Positions 9,961 through 63,894 are shown, counted from the stretch's first letter. The stretch: DNA of 64,000 nt from Hydrolagus colliei (GCA_035084275.1 CM068756.1:14384001-14448000); one strand, 5' to 3'. A program made the numbers and translations. Notes: generated by a model from the letters alone, not told the origin.

Positions 9961-10644
9961 TCTGAGATAGTTGCTAGGGTAAATTACTTCTCATTTGAGA
10001 CTGGATATTATTTGCATCAAACGAGGTAACATAATGTAAGTGAAACAAAGCATTACCCTCACAACACACACTGAACTGGAAAGTATTTACTTCCAGCCGC
10101 ATGTATGGCAAGAGGACCTGGTATTGAACATATCAGATTCATCCAGGAGGCAGCAGCCCGAACTCAGGCTAATTTTCTTTTAAATGTAACAGATGGAGAA
10201 TTCTTTTTTACAATTGCTCATGTGCTCTATCAATTGTGTGGGCATCAAACTGGATCATTGCTGTTGAAATTGGCTACAAAGTCAATGGAATGAAGATAGA
10301 AGGAATGAACTAAATGGGCTGCTGTTCGGCCAAACATTCAATTGACGTATAATCTGTGAAGCACTTTGAGACATCTCGATGACGGGAGCATTAAATCAAC
10401 TACAGGGATTAATAATATGAGCAATTCTTAAAATGCTTGGATTTTCCAGAGAGAGAGAAACGTTACTGAATGTTAAAGAGTCATCATAATCTATGTCTCA
10501 AACCCACAGTAAGTACTTGACTAAGTTATATTTGAAACAAAGTGTAAGAATTTCATGTTATGGTTTTTGATTTTATTTATGTGATTCTATCGAAGATATA
10601 GATTGACCAATTCAAACCCAACACACTGTGTTCCATAATTGTTG

Positions 10645-17300: not shown

Positions 17301-19253
17301 CTGAAAGGCGCTATACAAATGTATTTTTGTTATTGATTTTGTTAATCAATGCAACTAAGACAATTGAATTATCAACAGTTGACTTTTTAAAATTCAGTTA
17401 GCTTCTTACCTGCGTTAGGTTTTGGGATGGAATGTTTTGTGTCAGTGTAGGTGGCAATAGCTGCAGACTTCAGGCTGACGTGGGACACCAGACAAGTATA
17501 AACAGACGCTATCTGGACAGACTGTGTGTCTTCAATAGAGCTAGAGACCTTATAGAGTTCCCACGAGTTCTGCTTTTCTATGGTTACTGTCTCTTCCACC
17601 TTGATTCCTGATGTTGGTGTAATTTCGTTCCCATCTTTATACCATATGAGGGTGAAATCCTTTGGGTAAAACGCGGTAGTTTCACACACAATTGTCCGAT
17701 GCTTAGTTGAATTCCTAGAGAAAATCCTCAGTGGAGTTGGGGGAACTGTAGAACAGATAATGGAGGAAAATCATATTAAATTTCATCAATCATCTGGAAA
17801 AATTCAATTTTGATTCATTTCTTTGCAAGATCCTGATTTCTGAGAGCAAACGGAGGTTTCTTTAGATACACAAATATCACTCGCACAGCTGAAGATGCCT
17901 TCCTCCTACTTTAATTACTTTGTTGTTTGAACATTAATATTCAGTCATAATAATTGTCTTCAATAACATACGACGTATAATGATTAGCAGACAGAATTGA
18001 TCGCTGCAAACTCTTGAACAGGGGAGATAGTGGATTCCTGACAGGAATCAGCACACTGTGGTATTCTAGATCAATTGATAACATTCCAGCCTCTGAATTA
18101 GCGTGGCTTCATGCTCCACATCGGGACTTAGAATTCATATAGTCAACACTGAAACACCCGCTGCAATGCCATTCTTAGGATGAGAAATCAAATCTGGGAA
18201 CATTTGCGCTGCCTCCACTCTCCTGGGTCCGGCCTCCTGGTTGTCCCCAATCCTCCGTTCAACCATCGGCGGCCGTGCTTTCAGCCACTACCCGAAGCTT
18301 TAGAACTACCTCTCTCAACCCCTTCACCTCAACCCCTTCACCTCAACCCCTTCACCTCAACCCCTTCACCTCAACCCCTTCCTTTCCCATGTGCAGGTCG
18401 CGCCTGAAGACCTTCTGTTCGACGGCGCCTATGGCTTCAGCCTCGAGGCTCCGCCAGTCTGAAGCGCTCTGATTCGCTGCCCGGTATGGAGTGCGCTATA
18501 GCAAAGCCAGCTGTTGCTTTAACATTATTCGATAAGTGTGGTGAGTTGTACTATTTTGTGTTTTAGGTGTGCAGAGGTTAATTCTCACTTAATATACTGT
18601 ACTCTAAAAACTAGTGAACAAACTAGTATGAACAAACAATACGAAAAGCTTTAAAGCATTCACTGCATTTATTACTTTCTATGTAATTTTCAGGTGCTTT
18701 CACTCTTCACTACACACTCACCCTGCACAGTTAAACGTGATCCAGGTCCTGTTCCAATTCCTGATCCCTGACGGATCACTGAGCAGCGATAGACTCCAGA
18801 GTCCTGTAAACTCACATTCAGGAGCTGGAAGAAGCCGCTTCCTTTGCTTTTCACACCAAATGTTTTCCTGCTGTCCGCCTGTGTGTCCAAGTAGCCGTCC
18901 TCACCCTCCTTCTCCCACTTCACCTCCACTTCAGAACCGTGTTGAGAGAAGGGGAAGATACAGATGAAATTGATGTCTGACCCTTTGATGACAGTCGTAT
19001 GTTCGGGGTTTTGACTCACTATGACCGAAGAACCTTCAGGGACTGTCAGAAAAGAAAGTCAATCAATGATACATTAGATGATGCGTCGTGGAGTAAACAG
19101 ACGAGTAAAAGAGGAAAGGACCGTAAGTGTATATAATTAACGCAAAGAAACAAGCTTGCACATATTTCATAGAAGAACTAAATTATAGAGTAAACATATA
19201 CCTGTTAAAATAAAAGTTAAGACAGACAGGTACAGAAAGACAACGCTCCCCAT
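11321..19253 (-). CDS. G2: intact inhibitory SIRP-alpha-like V-C1 receptor (type-2 V), four-tyrosine tail
   Basis: Leader 19202-19253 (MGSVVFLYLSVLTFILT), V 18722-19042, C1 17410-17745, TM 15903-16010 (YALWGGCAAGVFIFLLLLILILW), cyt1 15203-15246 (GSQGNPTRSGNLEDW), exon A 12131-12241 (VAYVTL...TVYAQ), exon B 11321-11485 (LTYADL...SEYAEV...*). Phases are 1-1-1-1-0-0 and the frame is open. Confidence 0.88.
12785..13190 (-). mobile_element. L2-type LINE 3' fragment
   Basis: (CAA)n followed by tatagcgcctttcac tail. It is absent from the paralogous intron copy at about 7.03 kb. Confidence 0.7.
13305..14969 (+). mobile_element. 5'-truncated CR1 LINE, ORF2 reverse-transcriptase region
   Basis: ORFs 13314-13736 and 13761-14708 contain KSPGPDG, PEDW, NYRPVSL, DFQKAFD, GVPQGSVLGP and FADD. 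Stops fall at 13734 and 14706, and the tail is (TTCTATGA)-like. The pre-insertion site is preserved at 8120. Confidence 0.92.
15003..15170 (-). mobile_element. CR1 3'-end fragment
   Basis: Reverse complement of 14800-14960. Confidence 0.75.
16866..17101 (+). repeat. Inverted duplicate of G2 C1 acceptor region and 5' part of the C1 exon
   Basis: Reverse complement of 17606-17842 with about 8 differences by manual alignment. The ORF 17018-17248 CETTAFYPKDFTLTW is this copy. Confidence 0.9.
18170..18520 (+). mobile_element. L2-type LINE 3' fragment with an internal 14-bp tandem repeat
   Basis: L2 3' sequence, with aaccccttcacctc repeated about 4 times at 18317-18378. Confidence 0.65.
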
Positions 19254-24040: not shown

Positions 24041-24804
24041 TGGATGTTTCAATCAGAGGTTTCTTGATAGGAAGTTTCTATTACTTGAATATCCAGTTGC
24101 ATTCATTGTTCGTATGATATTAATAAGATGTAACCATATATTTAGTAATTGTCTTGGGGACGTTGGGCTTCCTCAAACCCAAAGTCATAGGAATCCGCTC
24201 AGCTGCTTCTGCCCTCCAGTCTTCTCCCCCTTCCCTATCTCTTCCTCACACCCTGGACCATTCCCATCCCTCACTACACACCTTTGAACCTGTCACCCAT
24301 CCTCTCTAACCATCACTATAAACTCATATCTCCCAACAATCCTATCCTTAAATAGCCATCCCTGGATCCATTCCAGTCTCAATCAACTACCCCATCTCCA
24401 ATCTCCCTTTCTTCTCCAGGGTCCTGGATGAGTTGTTGGTTCCCAGCTTCACTTCTTCCTTTCCCACCACTCCCGTCATGAACCCCTCCAATTAGGTTTC
24501 CATGCTGCCCACAGCACAGCCCATGTTAATAATAATATTAATAATAATAATCATTGCATTTGATTTAGTGCTTTTCATGTATTCTAGACATCTCAAAGCA
24601 TATCACAGAATACACTGTAAAGTGAATTAAATGTATTTTTGTGAGCAAAACGCAGCAGCCAATTGTGCACAGCAGTGTCCCACAAACAATTGTGGATTGC
24701 AATGATCGATTAATTATTGTGTGTTTTTTTGTTATTGAGGGATTATTATTACGTGAGTGTGTGTGTGTGGAGTAAGGAAACTTGCCCAAGATTTCGCCCT
24801 GACC

Positions 24805-25377
24805 TTCTGTAGTGTGGTGACCAGAATTCAATTCTGGTCACCACACTACAGAAAGGATGTGAAGGCATTGGAAAGGGTACAACGAAGATTTACTAGGATG
24901 GTGCCAGGATTGAGGGACTTCAGCTATGAGGAGAGGCTAGATAGGCTAGGGTTATTCTCTCTGGAGCAGAGAAGATTGAGGGGAGACCTAATAGAGGTTT
25001 ATAAGATCATGAGGGGTTTCGACAGGGCAAATAGAGAAAAACTATTTCCACTCGTGGGTGAATCTGTGACTCGTGGTCACAGATTTAAAATAGTTTCAAG
25101 GCGCAGTAGAGGGGAGCTGAGGAGAATTTTTTTCACTCAGCGAGTTGTTCGAATCTGGAATGCATTGCCTGAAAAGGTGGTGGAGGCTGATTCGATAACA
25201 ACTTTTAAAAGGGAATTAGATCTTTATTTAGGGAGAACGGGTCTATTAGGCTATGGGGAGCGGGCAGGGCAGTGGGATTGAATCGCTCTTTTCAAAGAGC
25301 CGGCACAGACTAGATGGGCCGAATGGCCTCCTTTTGTGCCGTAAAATTCTATGATTCTAGGATTCTGATTCTATGAT
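24805..25377 (+). mobile_element. CR1 3' fragment inserted in a SINE, with a 24-bp fold-back at its 5' junction
   Basis: Near-identical to 14435-14960. It is flanked by SINE halves (24560-24804 and 25378-25425). Confidence 0.88.
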
Positions 25378-30166: not shown

Positions 30167-33100
30167 TTACTTGGATCTTGGTTCCCTGCAGATAGCGGCG
30201 GCTGCTCCTCCATAGTTTCTCTCATGGAGCTCTGCATACTCTGCATTCTTAATGGTACTTTTAACTTTTCCTGTTTTATTAGAAGGACAAAGATCCAGAG
30301 AGGCGTATGTCATCTTGTTCTCCGTTGCCCCTTGCTTGGTCTGTAAAGGCAATAGTTGAGAATTTATTTCTATTAATTTGTTTTCAGTCTTCAGAAATCT
30401 CCTCAAATATGCAGCAACACTTGCCTCATAACTCATTTGATGAAGTCACTCTTTTAAAGAACTGAGCCAAACAGAATGTAGTGGCGACAAATTCTGTTAC
30501 GAACAGTTAGAAAAGAGCAGTGAAAACAATGTATGAGTTTTTTATTGATCTACAGAAATGTGGGATGTATATTTCCATATATAGTTGATGTCCTCAGTGC
30601 CTCATAAATTGACACACAATAACTAGTCTTATACAAGAAAACAAATTATTTGGCTGTACAGTTAACCCTTGCCGTACATGGGGGTTACGTTTTTGGAACA
30701 CTGCACACTCGGTAAAATTGCGTTGGGTAAGCTTAACAAGTAATGGGAAAAGGGGGTTTAGGGGAATCCAGCCACAGGCTACCCACCCCAAGCCTCCAGG
30801 CACATCCACACTTGACCACCACCAACAACAACAACGTCAACAATAACAATTTATATAGCGCCCTCCACGCCAGACGGCGTCTCAGAGCGCTTCACAGTAG
30901 CGGATCCCGGGACCGAGCCAGGAGCAGGGGCAGGAAGGTGACCAAAGGTGACGAAAAGTTCGGTGACCAAAAGCTCGGTGACCAATGCAAGGTACACACT
31001 GAGGTGGACAACAGCCGGCTAGCACGCTCTCCCCGCTCTCATTTCTCTCCCCACTCTCCCTGCTCTCCCCACTCTCGTCACTCTCCCTGCTCTCATCGCT
31101 CTCCCTGCTCTCCCTGTTCTCATTGCTCTCCCAACTCTCCCCGCTCTCATCGCTCATCACTCTCCCCACTCTCATAGTAGTCCAAGGCCAAGGAATCATC
31201 AGCCTCAAACTCCATTGAAGTGGATGCTTGGGGAGAGGCAGAAGTGGATGGCCGAGAAGATGCAGCAGCAGGTAAGTGTCAGCGGATGACTGCTGAGACA
31301 AACTGGCAGGTTGAAAGAAGGAAGTGATTTTCCGTTGTTTTGCCTTCCACTAGAAGTCTTTCATGAGCTCCCTGTAAGGCCCTAAGAGGCCATCCAGACC
31401 TGTTTTAAATTTCAGACTCCTTTCCATTATAGGGTCCATCTCCAAGCTTGACCTCCCAAGTGTGCATTGCGCGACCGGCATCCTCCCCAGTGCGAATGCG
31501 CGCGGGGTCAGCCAGCACTTTGCAAGTTTTACACGTGTTACACAAAAGAGTGATGCATTTTTTTCTTCTCATATAGTTGAATTCGCAATCGAGAAAGTTG
31601 TGTTTAGCGATGGTTAACTGTACACTGGCAGGTTGTTGCAATCATACCACAGCTCAGGACAGTGCCGAGAGTGAAGATCAGAGGAGAAAGAAAGATTAAA
31701 CGTAGACTAAGAAGAACAGCAAAATTGCACTTGTAAAGTGCCTTTCGTGATGGGAGGATATGTCAAGGCACTAGACGGTCTGTTTTAGACCCGAGCTGGG
31801 GTCGGGATCGAGGGGGGTGGAGGGAAGGGAGGGGAGTGGTGGGGGCATCATTGAAGCAGAGGTTCTTGATGCGGGACTTGAAGGAAGCTAGGGAGGGTGC
31901 GAGGCAGAGGGATTGCAGGATGGAATTCCAGAGTTTGGTGGCAGAATGGTTGAAGGCTCACCTGCCAATGGGCAGGCGGGTAGGTCGGGGGACACAGAGC
32001 AGGCTGGAGCCCACTATGTGGAGGGAGCGGACAGGTTGTTAGTGAGTTACAAGGTCACAGAGGTAGAGTGGTGTGAGGCCATGGAGGGCTTTAAAGGTGA
32101 GTACCAGGATCCTGAATTGAATCCTTGGGATGATGGGGAGCCAATGGAGTTAGGCCAGAATGGTGGCAATGGGGTCAGGGAGCTTGATTTGGGAGAGAAC
32201 AGGTGCTGCAGAGTACTGGATGATCGCAGCCTATGGAGGGAAGAGTTAGGAAGGCTGACAAGCAGAGCGTTGGCATAATCGAGGGAGGACGAGAACAGTG
32301 CAGATGGTAACTGCTGGAGTTCGGAGGGTGACGTGAGATACCAGACAGGTATAAACAACTCCGCTCTAAACGGATTAACCCTGGAATATGGGCTGATTAG
32401 GATATGCAGCACCACTTACCTCATAGGTCATTTGGTAATGCCACTGCTCTTTCCTGAACTTAGCCAAACAGAATTCAGTGGCCACAATACTGTTCGGAAT
32501 AGGTTAGAAAAGAAAAGTGAAAATCAACCCAAGATGTGCATTGACCTACAGAAATGTCTGTGTGTATCTTGTTGGTACATACTTGATATTCGCAGTGTGG
32601 CATAGATTGACACACGCAATAAAGCAGAAGAATAAATATTTCACTATACAGTGGCAGACTGTGGCCACCATATCACTGGAAAGCACCAGAGAGTGAAGAT
32701 TAGAAGAGAAAGAAAAATTAACCGTATTATATTTGCTATATATCAAATGCCAGGATTATTACTAGTATTAACCACAGGAATAGTACAAACTGTCTTACAG
32801 TGAGCACTGAAGTTAGTTCCACTCTATTTACTGAAACAATTTTGTATTTCTCAGATATACCTGAGCGTACACTGTCCTGTCCTTTTGTTTTTTAGGTCTT
32901 GGAGGTTTCTTAGAACTGATCAAATTTAATGTGGCATAAGCCATCCGCTCATTCTCTGCTCCATGCATCATCTAAAAAACAAAACGTGATCACAACAAGA
33001 ACAACATTGCATTTGTACCTTTCACGTAGGGAGTACATCCCAGGGCGCTGACAGATTGTTGTCTTCACTGTTCTCAAGATTGCTGTGTAAGTACTCATCA

Positions 33101-36100
33101 GAAAGCCCATAAATTAAAAATATTTCAAGTATTTGATAAGGAAATTTATAGTTTTATTGAATACTAAGTCAAGAATTGCATGACGACAACAATAAAATTG
33201 CACTTATATAGCGCCTTTAAGCATCTACTGAGATGCAATTAATAAATGTACCTGTTCTTCGCAGTGGCTCGATCCCGTCTGGTTTCTGTGTGGGCCTTGG
33301 AAAAAAATTCAATTAATAAAGAACTTGCTTTCGAACATGTTCACTTTGACCGACTGAAAAGCGTTTCGAAGCTCACAAGCTGCCAGAGTCTGTTTTTCTA
33401 AACTATATAAACCATATCCTGGGTTTAGATTGGAGTCTTGCATCTTCTTGCATCAAACTGTCTTTATTTAGACTCTTATCTAAGCCCAGTAGTCACAGCA
33501 ATCAAACAATCACTAATTATAAACTTTCTTATACACTTATTCCTTTCAATGTGTTATCCCTGCTCTCTGGAACCCTTTCCCAGAGTCCTTCAAATTCTCT
33601 CTTTCCTGCACCAACTATAAAACCTTTGATGAAATTACCAAGAGAATAGATAACTAACGGTATAAGATATAAAACCAAAGAGGTAATGTTGAACTTATAT
33701 AAATTGGCAGTGACACAGTTAGAATATTGTATCCAGGATTGTTTACCTCACTTAGGAAATTTACCAGGATGATAGCGGGAAAGATTGTCCTATGAGCAGA
33801 GACTGGAGGAACTGGGACTATTTCTTTTGCAATAAAGATGTTTTGACTGTCGACCTGATACAGATCTTTCAAATCTTGAGTGGTTTTAATTGTGTAAATG
33901 GAGAATTTATTTCCAATGGTAGGTGAGTTATCAAAAAGGCAAATGTAGCAGGAGACTCTTTTTCACACACTGAGTAGTTAGGATATGGAATCCCCTGTCA
34001 GGAGTGAACATAGGAACTAGGAACAAGGGTAGACTATTCGGCTCTTGAAGCCTGCTCCACCATTTAACTAGATCATGGCTGATCTACTTCAACTAATCTT
34101 TTCAATTCCAATTTTGGGTTGAAGCAGTTTGAGGCAAAATCCACATTAGCCTCCAAAAGGTACTAGACGGAATCCTGTAGCTCAGCAGTTAGAGCACTCG
34201 CCTTACAAGTATGAGATCTGTGTTTCGAATCCAGGCACATCAGAGTGAAACCTCTGAATTGGTTTCCTTACTCCACTTGCCTAATAATAATCCAACCAAA
34301 AAAAAAACCTAGAATAAATTAGTCATTTCAATCCATTGACTGTTTTGGACACACTATTGTGCGCAATTGGCTGCTGCATTTGGCCCACAAATACAGTTAA
34401 CCCTCATCGAATGCGACTTTATCAATTGTGAACTCAAGTATACCCTTTTTGACGAATACGCGCTGGCTGGCCCCCGCACGCATGCGCACTTGTGAAGACG
34501 CCGGCAGCTCCCTAACCCACCATTTCCCATTACTTGTTAAGCTTACCCAACATTATACTGAGTGCACAGTTTTCCAGGAACGTAAACCCTGCAATCGATG
34601 AGGGTTAACTGTATACAGTTCAATTCACTTTACAGTATATTCTGTGAAGCGCTTTGAGACATTTAGAAGATGTGAAAAGCACCATATCAAAATGAAACAA
34701 TTATTATAGATACAATACCTAAAATGAATCAAATGTAGGAGTATAAGGAAGATTCGGGTAAATTGGGACTCAATGGATTGCTCTTAGAAACCTAGCAGAG
34801 ACAGATTGGATAGAATAGTCTTTCCCTGTGCTGTGAAAATGTATGGTTCAATCCATCTCAACATGTATTGAGTCAATGTCACCATCCCATCTCACCACCA
34901 GCTTGACCAGCAGTGTCAAGCGCTTTGGGACGTCATCCAGATTTGATGTGCATTTGTATTGTACTGCTAAATGATGCCATAAGCACTTTAACCCAAATTC
35001 AGAGTTCAACAGCTGCATTTCAATTGATACTCGATATGTTTCTCCATTTATATACACAATCTGGATTTTGGTATATTGGGCACAATATCTAGGGTTACTG
35101 AGGAGACAAAAATGAAACTAACAATGAAGAAGGTTGTAATCTCATGGAAGAGATATAAAGATTGGTAGGTTGGAAAGACAGTTGGCAGATGAAATTAAAT
35201 GGAGAAAAGTGTGTTTTCAAATTTGGGGAATTGTACTCAGGTCTGACTAACAGGGTGCTGCAGGTGCAGTGGCCCAGGTAGAAAGTGTATGTTTTATATA
35301 ATCAAATATTCTCTACTCATAGTTTGTAACACAAATTAATTGTAGCGCTATGTGGAAAAGACAGATTAATTGTATGTGGACTCTTTAAAGAACAAATACA
35401 GACACAGTAGACCTTCTGTGCTGTACGTTTCTGTTGTTGCAATAGATTTCAGACATTGGGTCACAATAGATTTCAGACATTCGTTGCATGGAAATTTCTA
35501 ATTAAATATTCAGCTAAATGTATGCAGAGGGAGATTCTGTGAGGATATTGGCATTTGTGAATCAATCGCAACATATTAATCATTGGCACTGCTTTATAGA
35601 ATTTTTCTCAGACTTTATAATAATAATTATTATTACCTTTCACTCCTTGTCACCCGATACTCCCAAGCCTATTAACTGAATTAAATTAAACATTCACATT
35701 TAACTTCAATAAAATAGGAATGCATTTTACCTTGTTTTTTTCTTAATTGGCATTGTTTCCCAATGATGATCAAAAGCAGCAGAAACACAAGGCCTCCCCC
35801 TGCACATCCAATAATCAGTATTTTCTCGTTGCGAGAGTCAGTATCTACAAGAATAGCATAAATTGAGTGTGTAGTGATCCCAGCAATGAATTGTAGTTTC
35901 AGTAACTGCGCGGTGCATCGGACTAAACATGTTTTCAACAGGTTTTTTCAATTAATTTTTAAACAGGGTCTTGGCACAGAGCAGCAATGCAAGGCACTGT
36001 TGATGATCAAGCAGATTTTGAAGCTTCCAATTCATTGTACTAGCCAACCTGCGTCTAATACAATTTCATATTAATTAAGAATGCAGATTCCAATCCAGAC

Positions 36101-39100
36101 ACAGGAAAATTCGAGGTGGATGCTATTATGATCGATCATATTTTCATCTGACATATCATTTTGAGGAAAAGCCTCAAAAATTCATCACAAATTGACAGTT
36201 GATTTATAGGCAAATGCTGCAATTAATTTCTGCTACATAATGCCACTTAGTGGTTGAAAATATGACAACAAAAATAATAATCCTTGCTTGTGATATAGCG
36301 CCTTATCACATCGTCGAGACATCTCAGAGCGCTTCACAGGATATCTTGTAGATTGACTGAAGATGTTGTGGGCAAAATCAATTGGGTAACCAATAGTCAA
36401 TTGTAGGGAGGCTTTTAGCATTTAATAGCAATTTATAGAACATACCGGGATGCAAAAGATGTACATTTGATAGTATCATTTCTAATTGAACAGAATCTAA
36501 GAGTTTCAAGGTTGATGAGTTTTTAAGAGACGTTTAAGTTTTTTAAGGGATAGAATGAATCTTTTCAATTCCAAGACTATTTATGTACAACGCATTGCCA
36601 TTTTACGTATTTTTCTATGGAGTATTTCAACAGAAAATTACATGATTCTAATCTTCAGTATAAGTGAAAATAAAATATTTTCGATTGGTAATTTAGCTAA
36701 CAACAATTCACTGCAAGATATTGGTAAATAACCTGTGTTGGATTTTGAAATGGTGAAGATGGCAACTGCTGGAGTTCGGATCTGACATGAGATGTCAGAC
36801 AGGTTTCAACAACCCTGCTTTCGATTCAAAGACTATACATTGATAATTGATAGTTTTGTATATATTGAGTCTACAGCGAGAAATTTGGAGACAGGAAATG
36901 ATGGCGTAAATAAATGTAAATACGTTTTCCAGTAACAAGGTGTTTAATAATAATGACAGTAAACAATTAGGATTCCTACCTTTCAATCCTATGTTGGTTT
37001 TCGGAACGGTGTAGACAGCAACCACTGGAGATTGGAGAGTGACATGAGATGCCAGACATGTATAAACAACACCACTCTGCAAAGGTTGTGCGTCTTCCAT
37101 ATAGCTAGAAGCTTCATAAAGTCCAACTGTATTCTTCTCTTTAGTAGAAGTTACCCCAGTTATAACTTTGCTGCCTTTATTCCAAGTGAGCGTTACACCG
37201 TCCGGGTAAAAAGCAGCCGTTTTACACACAAGAACCTGTGATGTTGATGACTCGCTTTCAGAATCTCTCCGGAATATCGTAAGTGGGGTCGGGGGGACTG
37301 CAGGAGAACAACAAAAAAATTGCATTTGTATAGCACCATTCAAGTCTGGAGGACGTCTCTAGGCACTGGATAGTCAGTGTTCCACAGCCAAGCTGGGGTC
37401 AGGTTCGGGGTGGGTAAAGGGAAGGGTGTGGGGTGAGGTTAACTGATGGCACGATAAAAAGGAAGCTGTAAGGCAGGACTTGAAAGAGGCTGGGAATGGG
37501 CGAAGTGTAGGGATTGCAGGATGAAACTCCAGAGGTTGTGGGAGGAATGTCTGAAGCCTAGCACACTGATGGTAAGGCAGGTGGGTCAGGGGACATGGAG
37601 CAGGCTGGAACCGACAGTAGGGAGTGAGTGGACTGGTTGTAGGGGTTAGTAGGTCACAGATGTAGGGTGGAGCAAGGCAGCAAGGCTTTAAAGATGAGGA
37701 CCAGGATCTTGAATTGAATCCTCTGATGATGGGAACGAATGGAGTCGGGTGAGAATGGGGGAGATGGGGGTCACAGAGCTTGATGGAGGAGAGGACATAG
37801 GCTGCAGAGCTCTAGATGATCTGCAGCCTATGGAGGGAGAAGGCAAGGCTGACAAGCCGGGACAGACAGAGCAGAATAGTGTTACGTGTGATTAGTTAGA
37901 ATATAAAACTTTATTCCCATTTGAATTGTATATGAAAGGTTTCATTGTAACATTATAAGGAGGAAGGTGCTCCGAGATGCTATCCATGTGACAGGCACTG
38001 GACAAATGCATGCTGTTGTTGTCATATCACAGAATCTGGATTGTATTGGAATGAAACTGATGCTATTTGGATTTTTAATTTTGAACGATGTTTAGAGTAA
38101 CAAATGTTAAAAAATGCCTTTCAGGAGGTTCAGTCACTATTCTGCAGATTAACAGCAAGATGAAAGGGTTTAACTGTGATGATAAGATGGGTAAACATGG
38201 ATTGTATTTGATAGATATGAGAAGAATGGAAGGTAATTTCATTGAGCTGTCAACGAATGCTAAAATAGTGGACAATGGATTATTTTAGAAGAGGATAGAA
38301 GAGAAAATAGAATGCTACCCAACTCTAAAAAATTGGTTGTACCTATTTATTGTGAAATGAAGCAGTTTGGTTCATATGCAGTTCAGTGAAATTGTGGAAT
38401 CCACTCCCATAGGTGGCCTTAGACGCCGATTGAATTGGGATATTTAACAGAAATAGATGAGAGTTTTAAGGGGTTTGCAAAGTGACAGTGAAATAGAATG
38501 AAAAGTTCTGCCACCATTCTCGAGCAGCAATAACTGATTTTGATAAACCGCCCTTCACACAGGAAAACTGGAAATTTCTCTTTAATTAGAGTTATAAGCA
38601 AAACCATCAACACCAACATTTATTCTGTTTTTCTCTGGATTTTTAAGATTTCGTCAGCCAATTTTTTATAAGTAGAATGGGTAATTCAAAATGATTTCAT
38701 GGCTGATTGTGGGACATCATTATGCGCAGATTATTCAAGTTATCTCAAATTGGCTAATTATTTTTTAATATTTGCTTTTCATATCCAATAGTAAATTGTA
38801 AACGTCTGTAGCATGGGTGAAACTGACTTTGATTAATAATAATAATGCTTGCATTTGTTATTGACCCTTTCATTTTGAGATGACTCTCTGAGAATTCCCA
38901 AAAGTTCACTGCAAAGTGCGGCGATTTTGTAGGTGAACATAGCAGCCACAATAAAAGCCACAAAAGTGAATAATCAATTGTATCTGGGGTTTCAGTAGCC
39001 AGCACACAGGGATGAAAAAGTTTTCTCCTTTTGAATAGTTGCACTTAATCTTTAATGTCCACCTGAAAAGGCAGAATGAACGGTTTAGCACCTCATTCAA

Positions 39101-43950: not shown

Positions 43951-46241
43951 TTGCTGTTGTTGTTATTCATGTTTAACAGGCAGAGTCAACAGATCCTATG
44001 GCTCTACTCAACAAGTGAGGACAGATTATCCTGTGTCCTGGCCAACAATTTCCCCCCAAAAATTGGTGATTCTTTTCATGGTTGTTTGTTGGACATTACT
44101 GTGTACAATTAGGCCACTGCATTTGCCTGCAACTGCAGTCATGACACTGCACAGCTTCCCGTGATGTGCTTTGAGATGTCAGCCCAACATGAAAGGAACT
44201 GTACCAATTGCAAGGAGTATTATTAGGTTCCAATTGTCGTGTGTCCATTTTAATTTTCCTCAGGTTCTGTGCATTAAATGCTATTTAATTAACTGATAGC
44301 AAACCTGTTGCTTTCATCTTTTGTAATTGCTCAGATGATCATGAAATAATTTCAAGAAACATTGATCTGTAGCTCGTTCTGAAACATTAGAATTGTTTGC
44401 AAATTATGGCACCTGGTGGCAGACTGTACCGTATTTATAATATGAAAAGCTGTAATCTACACAATTGTTTCCCTCGTTCACCTGTTGCACCTTTGTTTGA
44501 GTGGCTGAGTATGTTCTCTGAACCCTCTGCTGGTGACCATTGGTGACCATATCTCCATCTACTATCTCACATATCTCTGGAATCTCACGTGTCTTCAATT
44601 GGCACTTTTTCCACTTCGACTGTGCCTATGGACAATACAACTTGCACCCTGGCTCAGTGACACATTCTTCCACTGGTCAGTGCTGGGTGTGTTATATATA
44701 CGGTAGTTGTTGTTGCTTCTATACTTCCATCAGAGAGATGTATTGAAAACCCAGAAGACCATTTTTGCTCAGCTAGGCTTCTCACACATGCAGAAATCCT
44801 TACCATGCTTATGTGAGTCACACTGCTTAATTTGAAAGAATGTTCTTTGGTGAGAAGTAATAATAATAATGCTATTAATAATGCTATTGACATAATAATA
44901 ATGCTATTGACATAGTGAAATGTGGCAGCCAATTGCACACAGCAGTGTCCCACAAACAGTTGTGGATTGAAGTGACCGATTTTTTTTCTTGAGGGATTAT
45001 TATCAGGCATGCAGATTAAGGAACAATGTCTAGTGTTTCACCCTGCCAGGAATTGAATCCAGATCTCTCGATTCCAAGGCAAGTGTTTTAATCACGAAAA
45101 TACAGGATTACACACGTCATTTGGGAGGGATGAGTCAACGTTGGATAGAAAGCAAATACCAGGAATTACCTTGCGTTGAGTATCACATCAAAGCATTAAA
45201 TGTGTGAGAAGATAGACCCCTATTCTCCTGCGCATCTCGGCACATATTCATGTGGATTGGGCGATGGCTATACCAGTTGGTGCGGTGCCATTTTATTCAA
45301 GCATGGAGTGAACCACTGAATAACACTCCAACAATGTATTTAAAAAAGAGGTTTACATTACAATAGGACCAACAGATAGTTTTGCCCCAAAATACACAAA
45401 GCCGCAGCAGGTTATACTATCGCCTGTAATACTCTTAGAAACATTGTGATGATGGGATAAAGCACTATATTAAATTCATGGATAATTAATAAACACAAAT
45501 TTGAATTAACAACAACAACGTCGATTTATACACTGCTCTCCACACTGGATAGCGTCTCAGAGCGCTTCACAATAGCGGATTCCAGGACCGAGCCAGGGGC
45601 AGGGGTAGAAAGGTGACCAAAGGCGCGGTCGAAGAGAAAGGTCTTCAGCTGTGACCTGAAGCTGAGAAGAGAGGGGGCGAGGCGAAGGTAGTGGGGAAGG
45701 GAATTCCAGAGCCTCAGGGCATCGTGGCTGAAGGCACAGCCACCGAGGATGGAGCAGAGGATTCGGCGGATTAAACCACTCTACAGTTCATGCTTCACTT
45801 CTAGTGGACCAGGACACAATGTTCACTGCGATATACCTCACGTAGTACGAATGCATAACTGTTATATAAACAAAGAAATATTGTGCACATTTGGTACAGC
45901 CGCTTTACTACAATAACCACAGCCTAATGGATGGAAACAGTTCATAACCCATGCTCTATATATAATCTAAGAGAGCGTGACTCTTGTGATGGAATTATTC
46001 TGTGACAGTTATAGGCACAGCAGAACGTTTCATCACTTAGTTGTTTAATGTAGGTATATATTTAGAAGTTAAGTCAACAGCTCAACAGCTCACCGCCCAC
46101 GCCACAACTTTTTCACTGAGTTGGACAAACTGCATCATATTTTGTTGGCCAACTTTCATGTTAGCCCATACCAAGTGTTGTTTTATTAATACTAAAGAGA
46201 AAGAGTGAGCAGAAGAGACTGGTTTATGTAACTTATTTGGT

Positions 46242-47725: not shown

Positions 47726-50700
47726 TTATTTAGATCTTGGTTCCCTGCAGACAGTGGCTGCTGCTCTTCCATGGTTTCTCACAGGGAGCTCTGCATACTC
47801 TGTATTCTTAACGGTACTTTGCAGTTTTTCTGTTTTATTGGAAGGACGTAAATCCAGAGAGGCGTATGTCATCTTGTTCCCCGCTGCCCCTTGCTTGGTC
47901 TGTAAAGGCAATGTTTGAGAATTTATTTCTATTAGTCTGTTTTCAGTCTTCAGAAATCTGCTCAAATATGCAGCAACACTTGCCTCATAACTCATTTGAT
48001 GAAGTCACTGCTCTTTTAAAGAACTGAGCCAAACAGAATGTAGTGGCGACAAATTCTGTTACGATCAGTTAGGACAGAGCAGTGAAAATGAACAGTGTAT
48101 GAGTTGTTCATTGACCTACAAAAATGTGGGGTGTGTATTTCCATATACAGTTGATGTCCCCAGTGACTCTTAAATTGACACCCAATAACTAGCCTTACAC
48201 AAGAAAAATAACTATTTTCTATACAGTTGCATATTGTCACAGTCTTTGCACAGAGCCAGGATAGTGCCGAGAGTGAAGATCAGAGGAGAAAGCTTATTAA
48301 CCAAAGATATGGTACTGCAGTCAGTTCCACTCTATTTACCAATGCAATGAAATTAGGTGGATACAAAAGGTTTATGTCTCGATTTTGTGTTTCTCAGATA
48401 TACCTCGGCGTACACAGTTCTCTCCTCATGTTTTTTCAGTCGTGGAGTTTTCTTGGAACTTGTCAAATTCAACGTGACATAATCCACTGACTTGCTCTCT
48501 GCTCTGTGCATCATCTATAAAAGAGAATGTGATCACAACAACAACACATTGCATTTGTAGAGCACCTCTCACATTGGGCTACTACTAAATATTTGTCCTC
48601 ACTATTCTGAAGACTACTGTGTACTTGCTGATCATAAAGCCATTAAATTTAAAATATTATCATTTATCTTCCATATGTTTTACAAGCAGACAGTTTTATT
48701 TAATACCACATTACCAATTGCTTGATACTGGGCACCTCTTATTTCAGTGATATATTGAGGCTGCGTAGATACGCGTAGGAAATCTATTTAAAATGCTCCT
48801 AGTTATTTATAATGAACAGCATCTTTCCATTACAACAACTCTGGTTTCAGATGAAACATTTACTGAGATGAAGAAATATACCTGGTCTTCAAAATGTTCC
48901 GATCCCCTCTGGTTTTCAAGCGGGCCTTCGAAAGAAATTAACAAATGAAAATTCACTCAATTTCCACAAAAGCATTTCTGGATATAGTTTGCTTTGACAG
49001 GATGTAAAGCGATTCAAAGTCCAAGAGCTTTTTTAAAAATAAAGTTGTCTTCTTGCATCTAATTGTCCTTATTTAGACTTCAATCTACAACAACAACAAC
49101 TTTGATTTATATAGCGCCCTCCACGCCGGACGGCGTCTCAGTGCGGCTTCACAACAACGGATTCTGGGGGTGAGCCAGGGTCAGGGGGAGAAGGTTGACT
49201 GAAGACGCGCTCGAAGAGAAAGGTCTTTAGCCGAGACCTGAAACTGGGAGGAGAGGTGGAGAGGCAAAGGGAGTGAGGAAGGTAGTTCCAGAGCCTCAAA
49301 GCGTAGTGGCTGAAGGCACGGCCGCCAATGGTGGAGCAGAAGATTCGGGGGACAAGGAGGAGGCCACACCCAGTAGAGCGAAGGCAATGGGTGCTGTTTT
49401 GAGGAGACAGGAGGTTGGAGAGGTTGAAGGACTGGGGTAATGGGGGAGAGAAGTTTGACGTGGGTGAAAATGCAGGCGGCAGAGGTTTGTATCAGTTGGA
49501 TTTTATGGATTGTGGTGGAGGGGAGACCGGTGAGGAGAGCATTGGTATAGTCCAGCAGAAAGGTAACAAAGGCATGGACCAGGGCTTCAACGGCTTTGGG
49601 GGCGAGATGTTGGCAGAGACAGGTGATCCGTCATAGGTGAAAAAAAGCGGTACTGGTGAGGGACTGGATGTGGGGGATGAAGGACAGTTGTGGGTTGAAC
49701 CTGACACCTAGGTTGCATATGGGTTCGGAGAGTTTTAGGGGCAGGCCCGGTAGGTAGAGGAGGTGAGAACCATGTGGTAAAGGCAGAAACCTAAACCCAA
49801 GAGTAGAGTAAAATAAATTACACAATTCATAACCTATCTTGTCCTCTCACTCTTATTCTTGTTAACGTATTTCCATTCACTAACCCTGTTCTCTGTAACT
49901 CCATCATGGAGTCCCTCCAATTCCCTCTTTCTTAAGCCTCCTTCAAAATCTGCTACAAAATAACCGAGAGAATAGATAATCCAGAATATAAAATATAAAA
50001 CCAAAGACTTGTTCATTACACAATTAGAATATTACATCCAGTATAATTTACCTCATTTAGGATATTAACCAGAATGATATCGGGGAGAATCGTTTTGCCA
50101 TATGAGCAGAGACTGGAGAAAGTAGAAGTTTTCCGCTTGGAACAAGGAGGGTTGAAGTCGACCTGATAGAGATCTTTAAAATCATGAGTGTTTCCATTGC
50201 GTCAATGTAGAGTTTATTTCAAATGTAATGTGAGCTAGCAAACAAGCAGAAGTGTGGTTGGAAAACTCTTTCCCAAACACTGAGTTGTTAGATTATGTAA
50301 TCCCAGGTCAGACGAAATGCTTGACCACATTAGCTTTCAAAAAGATACTGGATACAATACCTTAAAAGAAATAAATGAGGGAGTATAGATAGGTAAATTA
50401 GATATGTCTCAAGATGCATTTATTTGACCTTGATTTAAGCCATTTTTCCTTTCCCCACTACCCCATCCCACTGGATGCCTGGCCAGCAGTGTCAAGCACT
50501 TTGGAATTTCCTCCAGACTTAAATGGATTATATAAAAGTATAATTGTATGGCATATTTGTATTATTCTGTTAAATATTGTTCTAATTTACAATAACCTCT
50601 TTGACCCAAATTCTGAGTTATATCACTGCATTTCTATCGATAGCTTTTACTTTTCTCCATCTATATAAACAATCTGGATTGTGGTATAACAGGGCACAAT

Positions 50701-53700
50701 TTCTAAGGTTGCTCAAGAGACAAAAGTGAAACTAAGAGTGAAGAAGATAGTAATTTCATGGAAGAGATATCAAGTCTAGTAGATTGGATAGACAAGTGGC
50801 GGATTAAATTAAATCGAGAAAAGCATGGTTGAACATTTTGTGATTTGTGCCCGGTCCTGACAGGATGCTGTGGGAGCAGTGGCCAGGGCAGAATGTGCAT
50901 TTTATATAATCAAACATTCTCTACCTGTATTTTGTAAAACTAGTTCATTGTGGCGCAATGTGGAAAAGGCAGATAGATGGGTTGTGGACTATTCAAAGAG
51001 TGAATAAAGAATCTGTGTGCTGAATGGCCTTCTATCCACCACGTAGTCCCTCCACCTCACCCCGTCCCTGGCCTCCTTCAAGTCCCGCCTCAAGATTCTC
51101 CCGTTCGATGGATCCATCAGCACCTCCTGATCCCCACTTTCCTCTCTACCACCCTGTCCTAAACTCGGGTCTGAAACACTAACTGTCCAGTACCTTGGGA
51201 AGTCCTTCTGACGTGAAAGGCGCTATAAACAAGTGTAATTTTGTTGTTGTTGTATGCCTTAGCCTTCTGTAGTTGTATCACAACAGATTTCAGACATTCA
51301 TTGCACGGAAATTTCTGATTAAATATACACGGGAAGAGATTCTGTTAGGTTATTTGTAATTCAATCGCAATAAATCGACGATTGTCATCACTTTACCAGG
51401 ATGTCTTTCTCTCCTTGTCACCTCGAATTCTCTCACCGATTGACTGAATTTTTGTACTAAATTAAGCATTTCCATTTAATCTCAATGGAATAGGAATACA
51501 TCTCACCTTTCTTTGTTTTTAATTGGCATTGTTTGCCAATGATGATCAAAAGCAACAGAAATACCAGGCCTCCCACTGTACATCCAGCGATCAGTCTGTA
51601 GTTAGGTAGAGCAGCATGTTCTACAAGAAAAGCATAAGTTGAGTGTGTTTGGGATCCCAGCAATCAGTTATAGTTTCAGCAACTGTACGATGCACCAGAA
51701 TAGGGATGTTTTAGCAGGTTTTGCTACTGTTTTTTTAAAATTTTTAAACAAGGTCTTGGCAGGTTTGTAGCAGTCCAAGGCAATGTTGATGAAAAACCAG
51801 ATAGTCTAGATGATGAACAAGACCTGGAATTGCAGGACAGTCACAGTGGGGGAAGGTTCTTGGGCAACCTTTGCCAAATGCTATTCTGAATAGGCTAGAA
51901 AGATGAGTCTGTCCAGGGAGACAAAGCATATTGCAATCCAAAGCACATTGCACCGAACATTGCACCGAACATTGCAATCCAAAGGAAAAATTAGATGTGG
52001 ATGACATTATTGAGCAGGGACCAGGAATTTCAATTTTGATGAGTTTTAAGAATCCTTTTTCTTGGGGAGATGGTACAAATCTTTTCAATTCAAAGACTGT
52101 ACACATGAAGCTGCATGTTATTTTATATATGTTTCTATGGATACTGGGCAAGAAAATGATATGGTTGTCTATATATAATTTAAATATGTTTGAATAACAA
52201 TTTAGTTAACAACAATTAATAGTAGGATATTGGTAGATGTGTGGAGTCCTGTAGTTTAGTGGTTAGAGTAATAGTGTCGCAAGCGAGAGACCATGGATTC
52301 GATAGCCGAGCAGGGCAAAATGTTGGGCAAATTTCCTTACTCTATATTCTGTTCACTTAGCAGTAAGTATGAATCCAGTTGTTGGTCAATTTGTGTATCA
52401 CTTTCCCAGGGATAATAATACATTAAAAACACTGTTTAAAAATTTTAATTAATAATTTTGTCACTCAATCCATGACTCTTTGTGGGATACTGCTATGCGC
52501 AATTTGCTGCCACAATTTGTCCACAAAATATACAGTCAATTCACTTCACAGTAGCTCTTTCAAATGTCTCGAAGATGTGCTGTGGCTCTATATCATATGC
52601 AAGGATTATTATCATTATCATTAAATTACCTGGGATAGAAACTGTGAATCTCGAAACTGCTGGAATCCGGAGGCTGTTGTGAGACACGGAACAGGAATAA
52701 ACAACCCCGCTCTGTACAGGCTGCTTCTCTTCTAAATAGCTGGAAACTCTGTAAAGGCCATTTGAATCCCTTTCTTTACTGGAATTTATGCCAGTTTTAA
52801 CTTCATTGCCATTTTTACTCCAGGTGAGTGTTATATCTTCAGGGTAAAATGCAGCCGTTTCACACACAAGAGTCAGAGGCTTTGTTGAATCTCCTTCAGA
52901 TTCTCTGGAGAATATCGTCAGCGGGGTCGGGGGGACTGTAGGACAGACAATGGTGGAGAATCAGTTAATTGTGATCAGTTGGAAGGTTAGACTTTATTCC
53001 CATTTGAATTCTCTTTAAATTGTTTCCTTACAACATTATAATAAACAAGATCCTCTGAGATGTTACCACACATTAAGGGCACTATGTTGCAAGTTATTAA
53101 GCAATCTGGAGGGAACTGATCCTGTTCGGATCTTTTATTTCAAACACTGTTAAAAGATGCCTTGGAGGAGGTCTTTCCACTATTCAGCAGATTATTAGCT
53201 TGATGAAAGGATTTAACTGTGACAAGAAGGTGCGTAAACATGGTTTATATTGATAGATTGGAGATAATTTGATTGGGCTGTCAATGAATGATAACATATT
53301 GCATGATGCATTCTTCTGATAGAGGTATACAAATAGAAGGAGACATAATTCTGATATTTTGGCAAAGTGTATTAGGCCTGATATGAAAGTTAAATGTATC
53401 AACGGGGACGGAAAGTGGTGAACAAATTGGATTCAAATTTATTCCACCATTCTCCAGAACAGTGGAGATTTCACCATCAACAACAACAACAATTTACATT
53501 TATAGAGCGCCTTTCACGTCGGGAGGACGTCCCAAGGCGCTGAAATTTGAGATATCAGCAAATCTCCCCATTAACACTAATATTCCTTTTGTTCGGTTGC
53601 ATTTGTTTACATTCTATGAGCTTTGAACCAACTTACCATAATTAAAATAAGAAATTCAAAACCATTTTATGACTATTGATGTGTGCAAATTTGTGCAAAT

Positions 53701-59100: not shown

Positions 59101-59885
59101 CCAGCAAAATTACGTTTTCATGTTCTTAAATTGGCGTTGTTACCAACATTACAGGATCAGCAAATAGATCTAATCAATATTTTGCAACTCAATGATTGAT
59201 GCTTTTAATGGATTTCCGCATGTCTCAGACATTGTTTCCTTTGGAGCATAGACAATCAATGATTGATTAAACTACCGTATTCAAGTTCATTAAACATTTT
59301 ATTTACTGCAATTCAACAGGATAAAATCAAAGCTGTTATGTTCAATTATAATGCATGATACAGAGAATTTTGTTGGAGATTTTAGGCAAGTGCTCCTACA
59401 TATATTACACTGAACATAAAATAAAACTTTTATTCTTTGCAAAGCCATAGCCACCAATCATCGTTACTAAAAATGAATAGCTCTATATTAATGCAATAAA
59501 ACACAGAGTGACCTGGGACCTGGCGATCAAGTCTCAATAGTTCACATGTGCCTGTGAGTGCAATGTAAAATATTTGGAAACTTGTGGTAGAACGGCAAAC
59601 TTGACTCCATTTTCTGGTGCTGAATTTGAAATGTTTGCGAATTTAAAAACAAATAACAAGATAATCTGGGACTTTTTTGTAACTACGATAAAACAGACCA
59701 AGGTTTTATTTTTAAAAAGCTGAAAAATTTGAAGTGTTTATGCTGGTCCACTATAAAATTGGAACAGAAGTATAGATCAAAGTGCAGCTGCCTTCTGGAT
59801 CCTTTTGTGGAGAAAGCTCTCTGTGGCATAGAATTATTGAAACAAGACAGTAGCAGTCAGAAAACTTGATGTCATCTACAATCAT

Positions 59886-60525
59886 GGAGTCCTGTAGCTC
59901 AGTGGTTAGAGCACTCACCTTAAAAGCCAGCGACCTGGGTTCAATTCCAGGCAGATGAAACCTTGGACAAATTTCCTTACGCCACATGCCTAACAATAAT
60001 CGCTCAAAAAAAATTGATAATTTCAATCCATGATTGTTTGTGGGACACTATTGAGTGAAATTCGCTGCCACTTTTTGCCCATATACAGTAAAAGCCCATT
60101 TATCCATGACCCGATCGACTGGATTGCGTGACCCCCTCCTGGGGCAATTCCCCATTCCAGCAATCGTGAGTATGCTCACTTCATGCATGCGCGCAATACG
60201 TGCGCATGCGCATTTATTAAATTTACGAGCTCTAGGTTTCTACAGATCGGTAGAAAATGCTTTTTTACTGATCATTTTTTTACCGAGTATTGGAATCTTT
60301 ATTGGTAAGTATCCATACAATATTCTGTTCCTATTTAGCATATTATTAATATGGTATGTTTTAAAATAAGTAAATTTTTTGTGTTGGGTTTTCGGCAACT
60401 TGCCGCCTGATTATCCGACACAGTCAATTAGTCGACCCAATGTGTGCCGGATAAACAGCTTTTACTGTATATAGAGTCAATTCACTTTACAGTATATTTT
60501 GTGAAGCGCTTTGAGATGGCGAGAA
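59886..60525 (+). mobile_element. Deu-type SINE interrupted by a MITE
   Basis: Head GGAGTCCTGTAGCTCAGTGGTTAGAGC. The tail resumes at 60470. Confidence 0.75.
60086..60467. mobile_element. Tc1/mariner (Tigger-like) MITE, 382 bp
   Basis: TIRs CAGTAAAAGCCCATTTATCC / CAGTAAAAGCTGTTTATCC, with TA TSD. Confidence 0.8.
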
Positions 60526-61260
60526 CAACAACAACAACTTTGATTTATATGGCGCCCTCCAAGCTGGATGGCGTCTCAGAGCGCTTCACAATAGCGGATC
60601 CCAGGACTGAGCCAGGGCAGGGGTAGGAAGGTGACCAAACGCACGGTCGAAGTGAAAGGTCTTTAACTGAGACCTGAAACTGGGAAGAGAGGGGGCGAGG
60701 CGAAGATAGTGAGGAAGGGAGTACCAGTGCCTTGGAGCATAGTGGCTGAAGGCCTGGACGCTGAGGGTGGAGTGGAGGATTTGGGGGGACATGGAGGAGG
60801 CCAGACCTGGTGGAGCGAAGGTAGCGGGAGCTGGTTTGGAGAGGCAGGAGATCAGAGAGATTGGGGGCTGCAGAGAAGTGGAGGGACTTGAAAACAAAGG
60901 TGAGGATCTTGAAATTGATCCTCTCAAGGACAGGGAGCCAGTGAAGTCTGGCAAGGCCTGGGGTAATGGGGAGCGACGCTTGGTGAGGGTGACTATGCGG
61001 GTGGCAGAGTTTTGAATTAGCTGGATTTTGTGGATTGTAGTGACCGGGAGACCAGCGAGGAGGGCGTTGCAGTAGTCCAGCTTCAGAGGTGACAAAGGCA
61101 TGGACCAAGGTTTCAGCAGCTTTCGGCGTGAGTATTGCCGAAGACGGGCGATCTGTCGGAGGTGGTAGAAGGCGGTGGTGGTGAGCAACCAGATGTGGGC
61201 GAGGAAGGACAGTTGTGAGACAAACCTGATGCCTAGGTTGCGCACAGGTTCGGAGAGTGT
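60525..61260 (-). mobile_element. L2-type LINE 3' fragment
   Basis: ORFs 60545-61108 and 60586-61245 contain MRNLGIRF, LDYCNALLAGLP and RLHWLPV. Confidence 0.85.
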
Positions 61261-62180: not shown

Positions 62181-62364
62181 TTTTGCGTTTGATCACCAAT
62201 GACTGCCTAATTTCATGTGTCTCTAGGACGGTATCAATTTATTATTACACTGTTCGTATTTTCAACTTATCTTCAACATTGTCCAGCCTCTTGTGAGCAG
62301 AGTTTATGATCGATGATATGAATATTAAAATGATAACCAAGTAACAGATATGGAAATTATTACA

Positions 62365-63894
62365 CTAAGATATTGTTTCATGTTGTTCCAGACACCTGGA
62401 TATTTGGAGGAGATATCTTTATATCCACTGATTATTAGAGAATCCTCCAATATAACAAATTGTCATGTCCACAATCTAAACAGTCTGGTCCCGGTTAGCA
62501 GCGAACAACATAAATTTGATTCCTGTTGATTGATAATTTTATGGGCTACGATACAAATACAATAATGTGAATCAAATCACAATATTATTTTGAAGCAAAG
62601 AATGCCTCCTTACCTTTCAAGTTGTGAGATTTTAACATGGTCAACAATGAAGATGGTCAACACTATCACTACCAAGAAACAGGATATATACCGTGAAATC
62701 ATCATATTCTCTGACATTCCACGATAACCTAGAAAACAAATATTGGAATGCAAAAGGATTTACATGGAAACTATTCAATAATTAGGCTTTATTGGGAAAA
62801 TGCACACGTTCTTAACTATTTTCTATTGGAAGCTACAATGAGGTGGAGGAATATTATAAACTGTGCATTCAATTGATTGAAAACAGTAGAGAATAGCAGT
62901 GAATACCAATGCACAGGCAGTTTATTAGTGCTGTTTTAGAGATGTGTTTATATATTATGTGGTAATAGTTCCCCTGAGACTGTGTGCTCAACTTCAAATG
63001 TACCAGAGAGAATGACTCTTCAGACCCAAGCTGTGGCCACTATCGTAATCAAAACTGATTCCATTGGACATCTACTATTAAACTGAATTTCTTTAAAACA
63101 TCTCACAAAAGAGTTTTATTTTAATTACGGTGATTTTTGTTCCAAAGGAATAAGTAACAAAAGGTTTGTTCAAAAAATTAATCAGAAAATTCAATGGATT
63201 GATTAACAAATATTATTTGTTTCATTTGTACGTATGTATTAGTCCAAAAGTTTGATTTCTGATTTCAAACCTAAATATAGGTGGGGAGAGGACTATTGCA
63301 GGACTATTGCAGTTTGGCATGTTACTAAATGCCACAAAAGTAATGAACTTATTTGAAGGGAAGATATTTAGAATTTAATGGATAAACAAGAAATACTCAG
63401 ATCTGAGATATTCTTCGATTCAAAGACTCTACATTTATAGTTGCTAGTTTTGTATATATTAAGTCTACAGCGGGAAGATTGGATGCCTACAAATGGTGGC
63501 GTAAATAAATGTAAATATATTTTCTAGTAGCAAGGTGTTAAACAACAAAAGACTGCAAAACAAGTAGGCATCCTACCTTCCAATGCTGTGTACACTTTAG
63601 GAACAGTGTAGACGGCAACCACTGGAGATTGGAGGGGGACGTTAGATGCCAGACAGGTATAAACAACACCGAACTATACAGGTTGTGTGTCTTCCATATA
63701 GCTAGAAACTTCATAAAGTCCATCTGTATTCTTCTCTTCAGTAAAATTTATCCCAGTTATAACTTCACTACCTTTATTCCAAGTGAGCGTTGCACCGTCG
63801 GGGTAAAACGCAGCCGTTTTACACACAAGAATCTGAGATGTTGATGAATCTCTTTCAGAATCTCTGGGGAATATCCGCAGGGGGGTCGGGGGGA
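62365..63894 (-). pseudogene. G6 (3' part): activating-type SIRP-like receptor with Arg in TM and a nonsense codon in C1
   Basis: C1 63577-63894 has an in-frame TAG at 63674-63676. TM exon 62614-62728 reads GYRGMSENMMISRYISCFLVVIVLTIFIVDHVKISQLE. A candidate last exon 62365-62395 gives RCLEQHETIS* (uncertain). V and leader lie beyond the window. Confidence 0.75.

Follow-up and report, generated by a model that had tools for sequence, protein, structure and literature searches.

LILRA and PIR-A are immunoglobulin receptors of the kind that is coupled to FcR-gamma or CD3-zeta, and the transmembrane (TM) residue through which SIRP-beta couples to DAP12 is a lysine. CD89 binds the FcR-gamma dimer by means of an arginine close to the upper end of its TM segment, an arrangement referred to as RDD assembly, and NKp30 and NKp46 are assumed to bind zeta or gamma likewise, whereas for adaptors that carry a DxxxT/S motif (DAP12 and the CD3 dimers) the partner residue is a lysine in the centre of the span (PMC13107469). 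SIRP-beta couples to DAP12 (PMC12975943), and macaque activating KIRs with a TM arginine use FcR-gamma rather than DAP12 (PMC8102735). In this article, we describe a gene of a cartilaginous fish, here termed G6, whose TM exon encodes an arginine and whose reading frame is interrupted by a stop codon. It belongs to a family of V-C1 receptors for which our literature searches found no paper describing its members in cartilaginous fish; the same searches found no specific paper on SIRP-like or adaptor genes in these animals, and a search of NCBIfam returned nothing.

The analysed DNA is a stretch of 64,000 nucleotides from Hydrolagus colliei (GCA_035084275.1 CM068756.1:14384001-14448000), referred to below as the window. 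It contains a cluster of V-C1 receptor genes of the immunoglobulin superfamily on the minus strand, of which G6 is the final gene. Using tblastn and blastn within the window, other C1 exons were located on the minus strand in G1 (2543-2833), G2 (17435-17743), G4 (36981-37295) and G5 (52640-52933), the corresponding block in G6 being 63578-63892, and a decayed piece lies at 32294-32449. The TM exons of these genes are of the inhibitory type (2161-2265 in G1, 15907-15975 in G2, 35729-35836 in G4 and 51505-51594 in G5). Of G6, the C1 exon and the sequence 3' to that exon can be read, its V and leader exons being past the end of the window. The nearest public proteins come from Callorhinchus milii, the elephant shark (63-75% identity). 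Repetitive sequences are also present: ORFs resembling reverse transcriptase (LINE-type) lie on the plus strand at 13314-14708 and 24757-25281 within the receptor cluster, and interspersed repeats are found at 59885-60090 and 60469-61258. The former is a unit of about 200 bp with more than 10 copies in the window on both strands, and an element at 60525-61258, with long ORFs rich in proline, serine and leucine, has copies at 45508-45769 and 49087-49733.

We conclude, with a probability of about three in four, that G6 is a paired receptor of the activating type that has been inactivated in this assembly and whose predicted anchor points to probable coupling with FcR-gamma or CD3-zeta. The original prediction presented G6 as the activating counterpart of its neighbours, and this is borne out by several features, namely the homology of its ectodomain to the inhibitory neighbours (seen in the C1 domain, with the V exon beyond the window end), an arginine in the TM segment, a tail without tyrosine, and synteny with units of other fish in which an activating gene is followed by an inhibitory one.

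The TM exon of G6 (62615-62728, on the minus strand, as are all exons, introns and codons of G6 given below) comprises 114 bases and is placed about 850 bp downstream of the C1 exon. It has the acceptor ttttctag and the donor AG/gtaagg, is entered in phase 1 and left in phase 2, and codes for a short stalk, a hydrophobic span of 21 residues, a boundary aspartate and the beginning of a short tail that lacks tyrosine. The codon CGG at 62691-62693 specifies an arginine, which takes the fifth place in the best hydrophobic window of 21 residues (with a mean Kyte-Doolittle value of 2.4), and the span contains no lysine. Without the arginine and the four residues that precede it only 16 hydrophobic residues remain, which is too few for a membrane span, so in all probability the arginine is embedded in the bilayer, in its outer part. 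Sequence and translation thus agree with the original prediction of a TM exon with an arginine at this codon and an end in phase 2, and position 5 of 21, near the outer end of the span, is in accord with its description of the arginine as N-terminal in the TM segment.

The exon had further been claimed to be unrelated to the other TM exons, and tblastn and blastn searches with it within the window found no second copy; the TM exons of G1, G2, G4 and G5 constitute a separate family. Similarly, tyrosine exons and an exon B had been reported missing ahead of G5, and our search of the interval from G6 to G5 found neither a tyrosine-tail exon nor a TM exon of the inhibitory type. The first ~160 bp of the intron between the C1 and TM exons (63414-63576) are common to G4 (36820-36980), with 82% identity.

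A HMMER scan with the C1 piece of G6 returned, in addition to many inhibitory relatives, the protein XP_067853651.1 (P0017) of the sevengill shark Heptranchias perlo. The NCBI model of this protein splices the C1 domain to a TM segment homologous to that of the G6 exon, with the same arginine and with identity at 17 of 30 core residues; past the span, both read Asp-His-Val-Lys-Ile-Ser. As comparison DNA we used two elephant-shark loci around inhibitory genes (L002 and L003) and the Heptranchias perlo locus (L001), the tblastn search with the G6 TM exon being run against about 77 kb of loci. Homologous TM exons were found at L003:3495-3608 (66% identity to G6, E=7.6e-14) and L002:4095-4211 (48% identity to G6, E=9.5e-07) in the elephant shark and at L001:12663-12776 (E=5.5e-08) in Heptranchias perlo, and the next-best matches had E values of at least 0.025. 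Both elephant-shark exons are unannotated and each lies upstream of an inhibitory gene.

The four genes agree closely in their organization. In every one of them the TM exon with arginine is found ~800 bp past the C1 exon and retains an AG acceptor and an AG/GTAAG donor; the arginine is invariant in all four copies, occupies position 5 of the best 21-mer in each, and is separated from the boundary aspartate by exactly 16 residues. A chance ORF was considered as an explanation of the G6 TM exon and is ruled out by the synteny and by the homologous exons in three other loci. The split between chimaeras and elasmobranchs is dated to about 420 Mya (PMC6238376). Between the TM exons of G6 and Heptranchias perlo the synonymous differences are saturated (pS 0.76) while pN is 0.39, which, together with the date of the split, indicates that the exon is old and has been constrained over the long term. 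On these comparisons, we judge that the TM exon with arginine is real, old, and common to chimaeras and a shark.

Over the whole interval between the C1 exon of G6 and the beginning of G5, the window is colinear (about 73-79% identity) with the two elephant-shark units in which an inhibitory gene follows an activating one; in L002, the segment colinear with the C1 region of G6 is 2923-4214. The activating gene at this locus has a V exon (859-1164), a C1 exon (2993-3310) and the TM exon with arginine, all open, apparently intact and unannotated. Its predicted tail starts with V-D-Y-L-T-I, which by its letters fits the ITIM consensus but lies directly at the membrane boundary. The activating gene of L003 (Callorhinchus milii MU249845.1) is a pseudogene with a stop at the last codon of its V exon (951-1262) and a C1 exon (2569-2680) devoid of its 5' two-thirds, the homology to G6 beginning at the equivalent of 63665. 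This point is nine bases after the stop in G6. The TM exon of the same pseudogene is the closest to that of G6. The elephant-shark annotation has no gene model over the activating gene at either locus.

In Heptranchias perlo, the C1 domain of the activating gene differs at few aligned positions from that of the inhibitory protein P0157, and near-identity of activating and inhibitory C1 domains is the usual signature of paired receptors homogenised by gene conversion. The NCBI name of XP_067853651.1 (L001:10001-13630), 'H-2 class II histocompatibility antigen, A-S beta chain-like', is wrong. The model is also 5'-truncated, since it begins within the V exon, whose full extent is about 9752-10066. 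A search with the TM region alone of this shark protein (117-160) returned only the match to itself, a search with the whole protein returned inhibitory relatives only, and a second Heptranchias locus contained no exon of the arginine type.

The 3' end of G6 can be read in two ways. The splice donor of the TM exon overlaps a TAA triplet (62610-62612, AG/GTAA), which is also the case in both elephant-shark copies, and if the donor is unused the protein would end one codon past the TM exon, with an arginine and then the stop, in all three chimaera-lineage copies. Alternatively, a three-way alignment points to a candidate terminal mini-exon at 62365-62395, whose AG acceptor (62396-62397) has an aligned AG in each of the two elephant-shark copies. 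Read in phase 2, the candidate gives R-C-L-E-Q-H-E-T-I-S-stop, the final base of the stop being 62365, where the interval of the original prediction begins. It is 68% identical to L002, which is no better than its flanks (about 70%). Under either option, the predicted tail of G6 has 10-19 residues and no tyrosine. A block of 67 bp at 62393-62459 is 82% identical to L002 (compared to about 70% for the flanks) and almost invariant in the three-way alignment, and it contains a branch-point-like CTAAT motif and a pyrimidine run just ahead of the conserved AG. This block may carry the splicing signals of the terminal mini-exon. For the 3' exon that the shark model adds, neither the window nor the elephant shark has a counterpart, and the first AATAAA downstream of the TM exon (62238-62243) is not conserved. 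Phase 2 is the end phase of all three chimaera-lineage copies of the TM exon, whereas the Heptranchias exon stops one base earlier, in phase 1.

The sequence, its translation and Pfam define the C1-set Ig domain exon of G6 at 63577-63894, with phases 1-1, an acceptor ending in ctacag and the donor G/gtagga. The Pfam C1-set model PF07654 matches the first 72 codons of the exon (E=1.8e-07, 31.8 bits, gathering cut-off 21); the codons for both cysteines and the tryptophan are present, the domain is cut by the stop, and the histidine of the C-x-V-x-H motif is changed to asparagine. Compared to the C1 exon of G4, that of G6 has 86% nucleotide and 77% amino-acid identity, and the amino-acid identity of the domain is 57% with G5 and 61% with G1. 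When the window's five C1 exons are aligned by codon, the in-frame TAG is placed at codon 73 (63674-63676), eight codons ahead of the second cysteine of the domain (V-stop-F-G-V-V-Y-T-C), and the aligned codon is CAG, for glutamine, in all four paralogues (G1, G2, G4 and G5). The original prediction was therefore correct in placing a change of CAG to TAG just ahead of this cysteine, and also in describing the splice sites as canonical despite the stop, which holds for all four sites of the C1 and TM exons.

The protein alignment of the G6 C1 domain comprised 18 relatives. The column of the stop contains glutamine in four of the five aligned elephant-shark relatives and a two-residue gap in the fifth. 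Two further changes, both at conserved F/G-strand positions, are specific to G6, namely the replacement of histidine by asparagine in the C-x-V-x-H motif (63641-63643), where 22 of 23 relatives have histidine, and, two residues past it, a replacement of serine or threonine by proline (63635-63637). The codon that follows the stop is TTC in G6 and AGT, AGC or GGA in the paralogues, being altered in G6 only. At 63671-63676, G6 has three substitutions in five bases relative to the paralogues (CAGAG to TAGTT), which make both the stop and a change of serine or glycine to phenylalanine; judged from the sequence, these look like one complex mutation rather than independent events.

Owing to the TAG at 63674-63676, the ORF of G6 fails as that of a membrane protein. 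The usual rule for nonsense-mediated decay refers to a distance of 50-55 nt. The stop sits 97 nt upstream of the junction between the C1 and TM exons, and consequently a normally spliced G6 mRNA would, by this general rule, be expected to be a target of such decay.

In order to assess the state of the gene, differences between the C1 exons of G6 and G4 were polarised, for which G5 and the L002 exon of the elephant shark served as outgroups. The G6 branch has eight non-synonymous changes and one synonymous change (nine in 315 nt), and the G4 branch has 10 and 7, respectively. The ratio of 8:1 is suggestive of relaxed constraint in G6, although it involves nine changes and is not significantly different from the G4 branch. 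The overall dN/dS between the two C1 exons is 0.44, and their identity of 86% compares to 82% in the adjoining intron. For the TM exon, the comparison of G6 with L003 gives a dN of 0.21 and a dS of 0.20, where L003 is itself a pseudogene and alone able to bring omega to ~1, and the comparison with L002 gives 71% identity versus 70% in the intron, i.e., no excess conservation. The absence of any frameshift, the four canonical splice sites and the short branch argue that any loss of function in G6 is not old when set against the chimaera/elephant-shark divergence. This fits a fairly recent pseudogene or a null allele in this assembly, as far as can be inferred from the sequence. G6 as an ancient pseudogene was also considered and is ruled out by the absence of indels and the small number of lineage-specific changes.

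Presence/absence and null polymorphism of activating members are common in paired-receptor families. The stop could accordingly be a recent or segregating null, and other haplotypes with CAG would then make the full V-C1-TM(Arg) receptor. The stop taken alone is a single C-to-T transition, the gene has neither a frameshift nor a damaged splice site, and the polarised changes on the G6 branch are few, 9 in 315 nt as opposed to 17 for G4, all of which speaks for a null allele. However, the codon beside the stop is changed and G6 has its own substitutions of histidine by asparagine and of serine or threonine by proline at conserved sites of the C1 domain. The 8:1 ratio of polarised changes, and a dN of the TM exon that is about equal to dS relative to its closest orthologue, the L003 pseudogene, likewise speak in part against a fresh null. 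We regard this account as possible but tentative.

In the reading that we prefer, G6 would be the activating member of a tandem activating/inhibitory V-C1 unit that is conserved in cartilaginous fish, and it is inactivated in this assembly. An intact copy would have V and C1 domains like those of its inhibitory neighbour and would take its anchor from a separate, ancient exon. This anchor would place the arginine about five residues into the outer leaflet of the membrane, and the tail following it would be short and tyrosine-free. Such a receptor would not signal alone; it would presumably reach the surface and signal via pairing of its arginine with the pair of aspartates of a dimeric ITAM adaptor. 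Given how deep the basic residue lies and which residue it is, the likeliest adaptor would be of the FcR-gamma or CD3-zeta type and not DAP12. In the copy analysed here, the change of CAG to TAG in the C1 exon would truncate the protein ahead of both the second cysteine and the anchor, and the normally spliced mRNA would in addition be open to nonsense-mediated decay.

The arginine at position 5 of 21 in the G6-type anchor provides a reasonable fit to the zeta/gamma pattern, by analogy with a positional rule that was learned from mammals. One could argue instead that the arginine of the intact paralogues couples to an adaptor of the DAP12 or DAP10 type, or to none, in which case the contrast with SIRP-beta would be confined to the residue. 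NKG2D, for example, uses an arginine with DAP10 (PMC13107469). However, the arginine of NKG2D is central in the span and other users of the DxxxT/S adaptors have a central lysine, whereas an arginine at position 5 of 21, as found in all four copies, is the arrangement of CD89, NKp46 and TCR-alpha (PMC13107469), which makes coupling to DAP12 or DAP10 unlikely. A more far-reaching proposal is that the arginine anchor, marked by the arginine at position 5, the 16 residues to the aspartate and some 420 million years of conservation in chimaeras and sharks, represents the ancestral FcR-gamma/zeta wiring of the SIRP-like V-C1 receptors of jawed vertebrates, that the lysine and DAP12 of mammalian SIRP-beta came later, and that the C1 exon of G6 is perhaps skipped to yield a V-TM receptor. 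We consider this combination of claims quite improbable.

The skipping of the C1 exon can also be proposed by itself, as was done in the original prediction: G6 would be functional as a V-TM(Arg) activating receptor and the stop would be tolerated or irrelevant. The claim that loss of a phase 1-1 exon keeps the frame is correct, the phases permitting an in-frame join of V to TM, and neither the TM exon nor either of its splice sites is damaged. On the other hand, the splice sites of the C1 exon are canonical and inclusion should therefore be the default, no annotated relative here is without a C1 domain, and the L003 copy, with its truncated C1 exon, also has a stop in the V exon and is simply dead. 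Moreover, the TM exon of G6 is not conserved in excess of intron DNA relative to its elephant-shark counterparts. We treat this account as a conjecture and as very unlikely. An assembly or base-calling error at the TAG, which would leave G6 intact and would take only a single-base change, is more improbable still, because the adjacent codon and two more conserved codons are altered in G6 only, which resembles real divergence and not an isolated miscall.

G6 as an inactivated activating-type receptor is a broken gene, and its value would be to illustrate how genes turn over in clusters of this sort and to point to intact paralogues. The shared exon with the arginine anchor implies that an activating partner with a zeta/gamma-style anchor predates the split between chimaeras and sharks, which adds a data point on the age of the paired activating/inhibitory receptor design. 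The kind of gene, an activating paired receptor, is ordinary; the wider interest lies, in our opinion, in the great age of the anchor and its exact geometry.

The G6 family would work in the manner of SIRP-alpha/SIRP-beta and of other paired receptors. Among the known systems, mammalian SIRP-beta1 resembles G6 in being the activating partner within a paired family in which the inhibitory members carry a multi-tyrosine tail, and it shares with the G6 family a V-set and C1-set ectodomain, a basic TM residue and a tail that is very short. In automatic annotation, the relatives from the elephant shark are called SIRP-beta-like or SIRP-alpha-like. There are also differences: SIRP has a V-set and two C1-set domains, whereas the relatives of G6 have V and one C1, and between its TM exon and the window end G6 has just one C1 exon; SIRP-beta has a TM lysine for DAP12, whereas G6 has an arginine near the outer end of the span and no lysine. 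When the full-length inhibitory elephant-shark protein P0151 was matched to solved structures, SIRP-alpha (2wng) tied with an IgA1 heavy chain (both E=1.9e-15), and SIRP-gamma (E=2.6e-14) was followed closely by antibody light chains. On such matches, orthology of the G6 family with SIRP, or its membership in the SIRP family proper, is unproven. The entry 9dmx_A of the PDB, 'UrIg2 V-C1-C2-C3', is among the top five matches of P0151 (E=5.1e-13) and may be a closer structural comparator for the G6 family than SIRP.

CD89, NKp46 and NKp30 are similar to G6 in having an arginine in the top part of the TM segment and a short tail without signalling motifs, but they are built from C2/I-set domains, whereas the G6 family has V and C1-set domains and lies in a different gene cluster. 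The closest likeness is to XP_067853651.1 and the genes of L002 and L003, which share with G6 the C1-to-TM(Arg) build, the spacing of ~800 bp, the spacing from the arginine to the aspartate, and an adjoining inhibitory gene. These copies differ in their state: the C1 and TM exons are open in the L002 gene and in the shark gene, G6 has the stop, and L003 is a pseudogene with different lesions. Clusters of paired receptors are known to have null or pseudogene members, such as the pseudogenes of activating KIR, LILR and Ly49. Like G6, these combine one nonsense mutation with an otherwise well-preserved activating gene in a rapidly duplicating cluster, and the difference is one of lineage, G6 being a gene of a cartilaginous fish.
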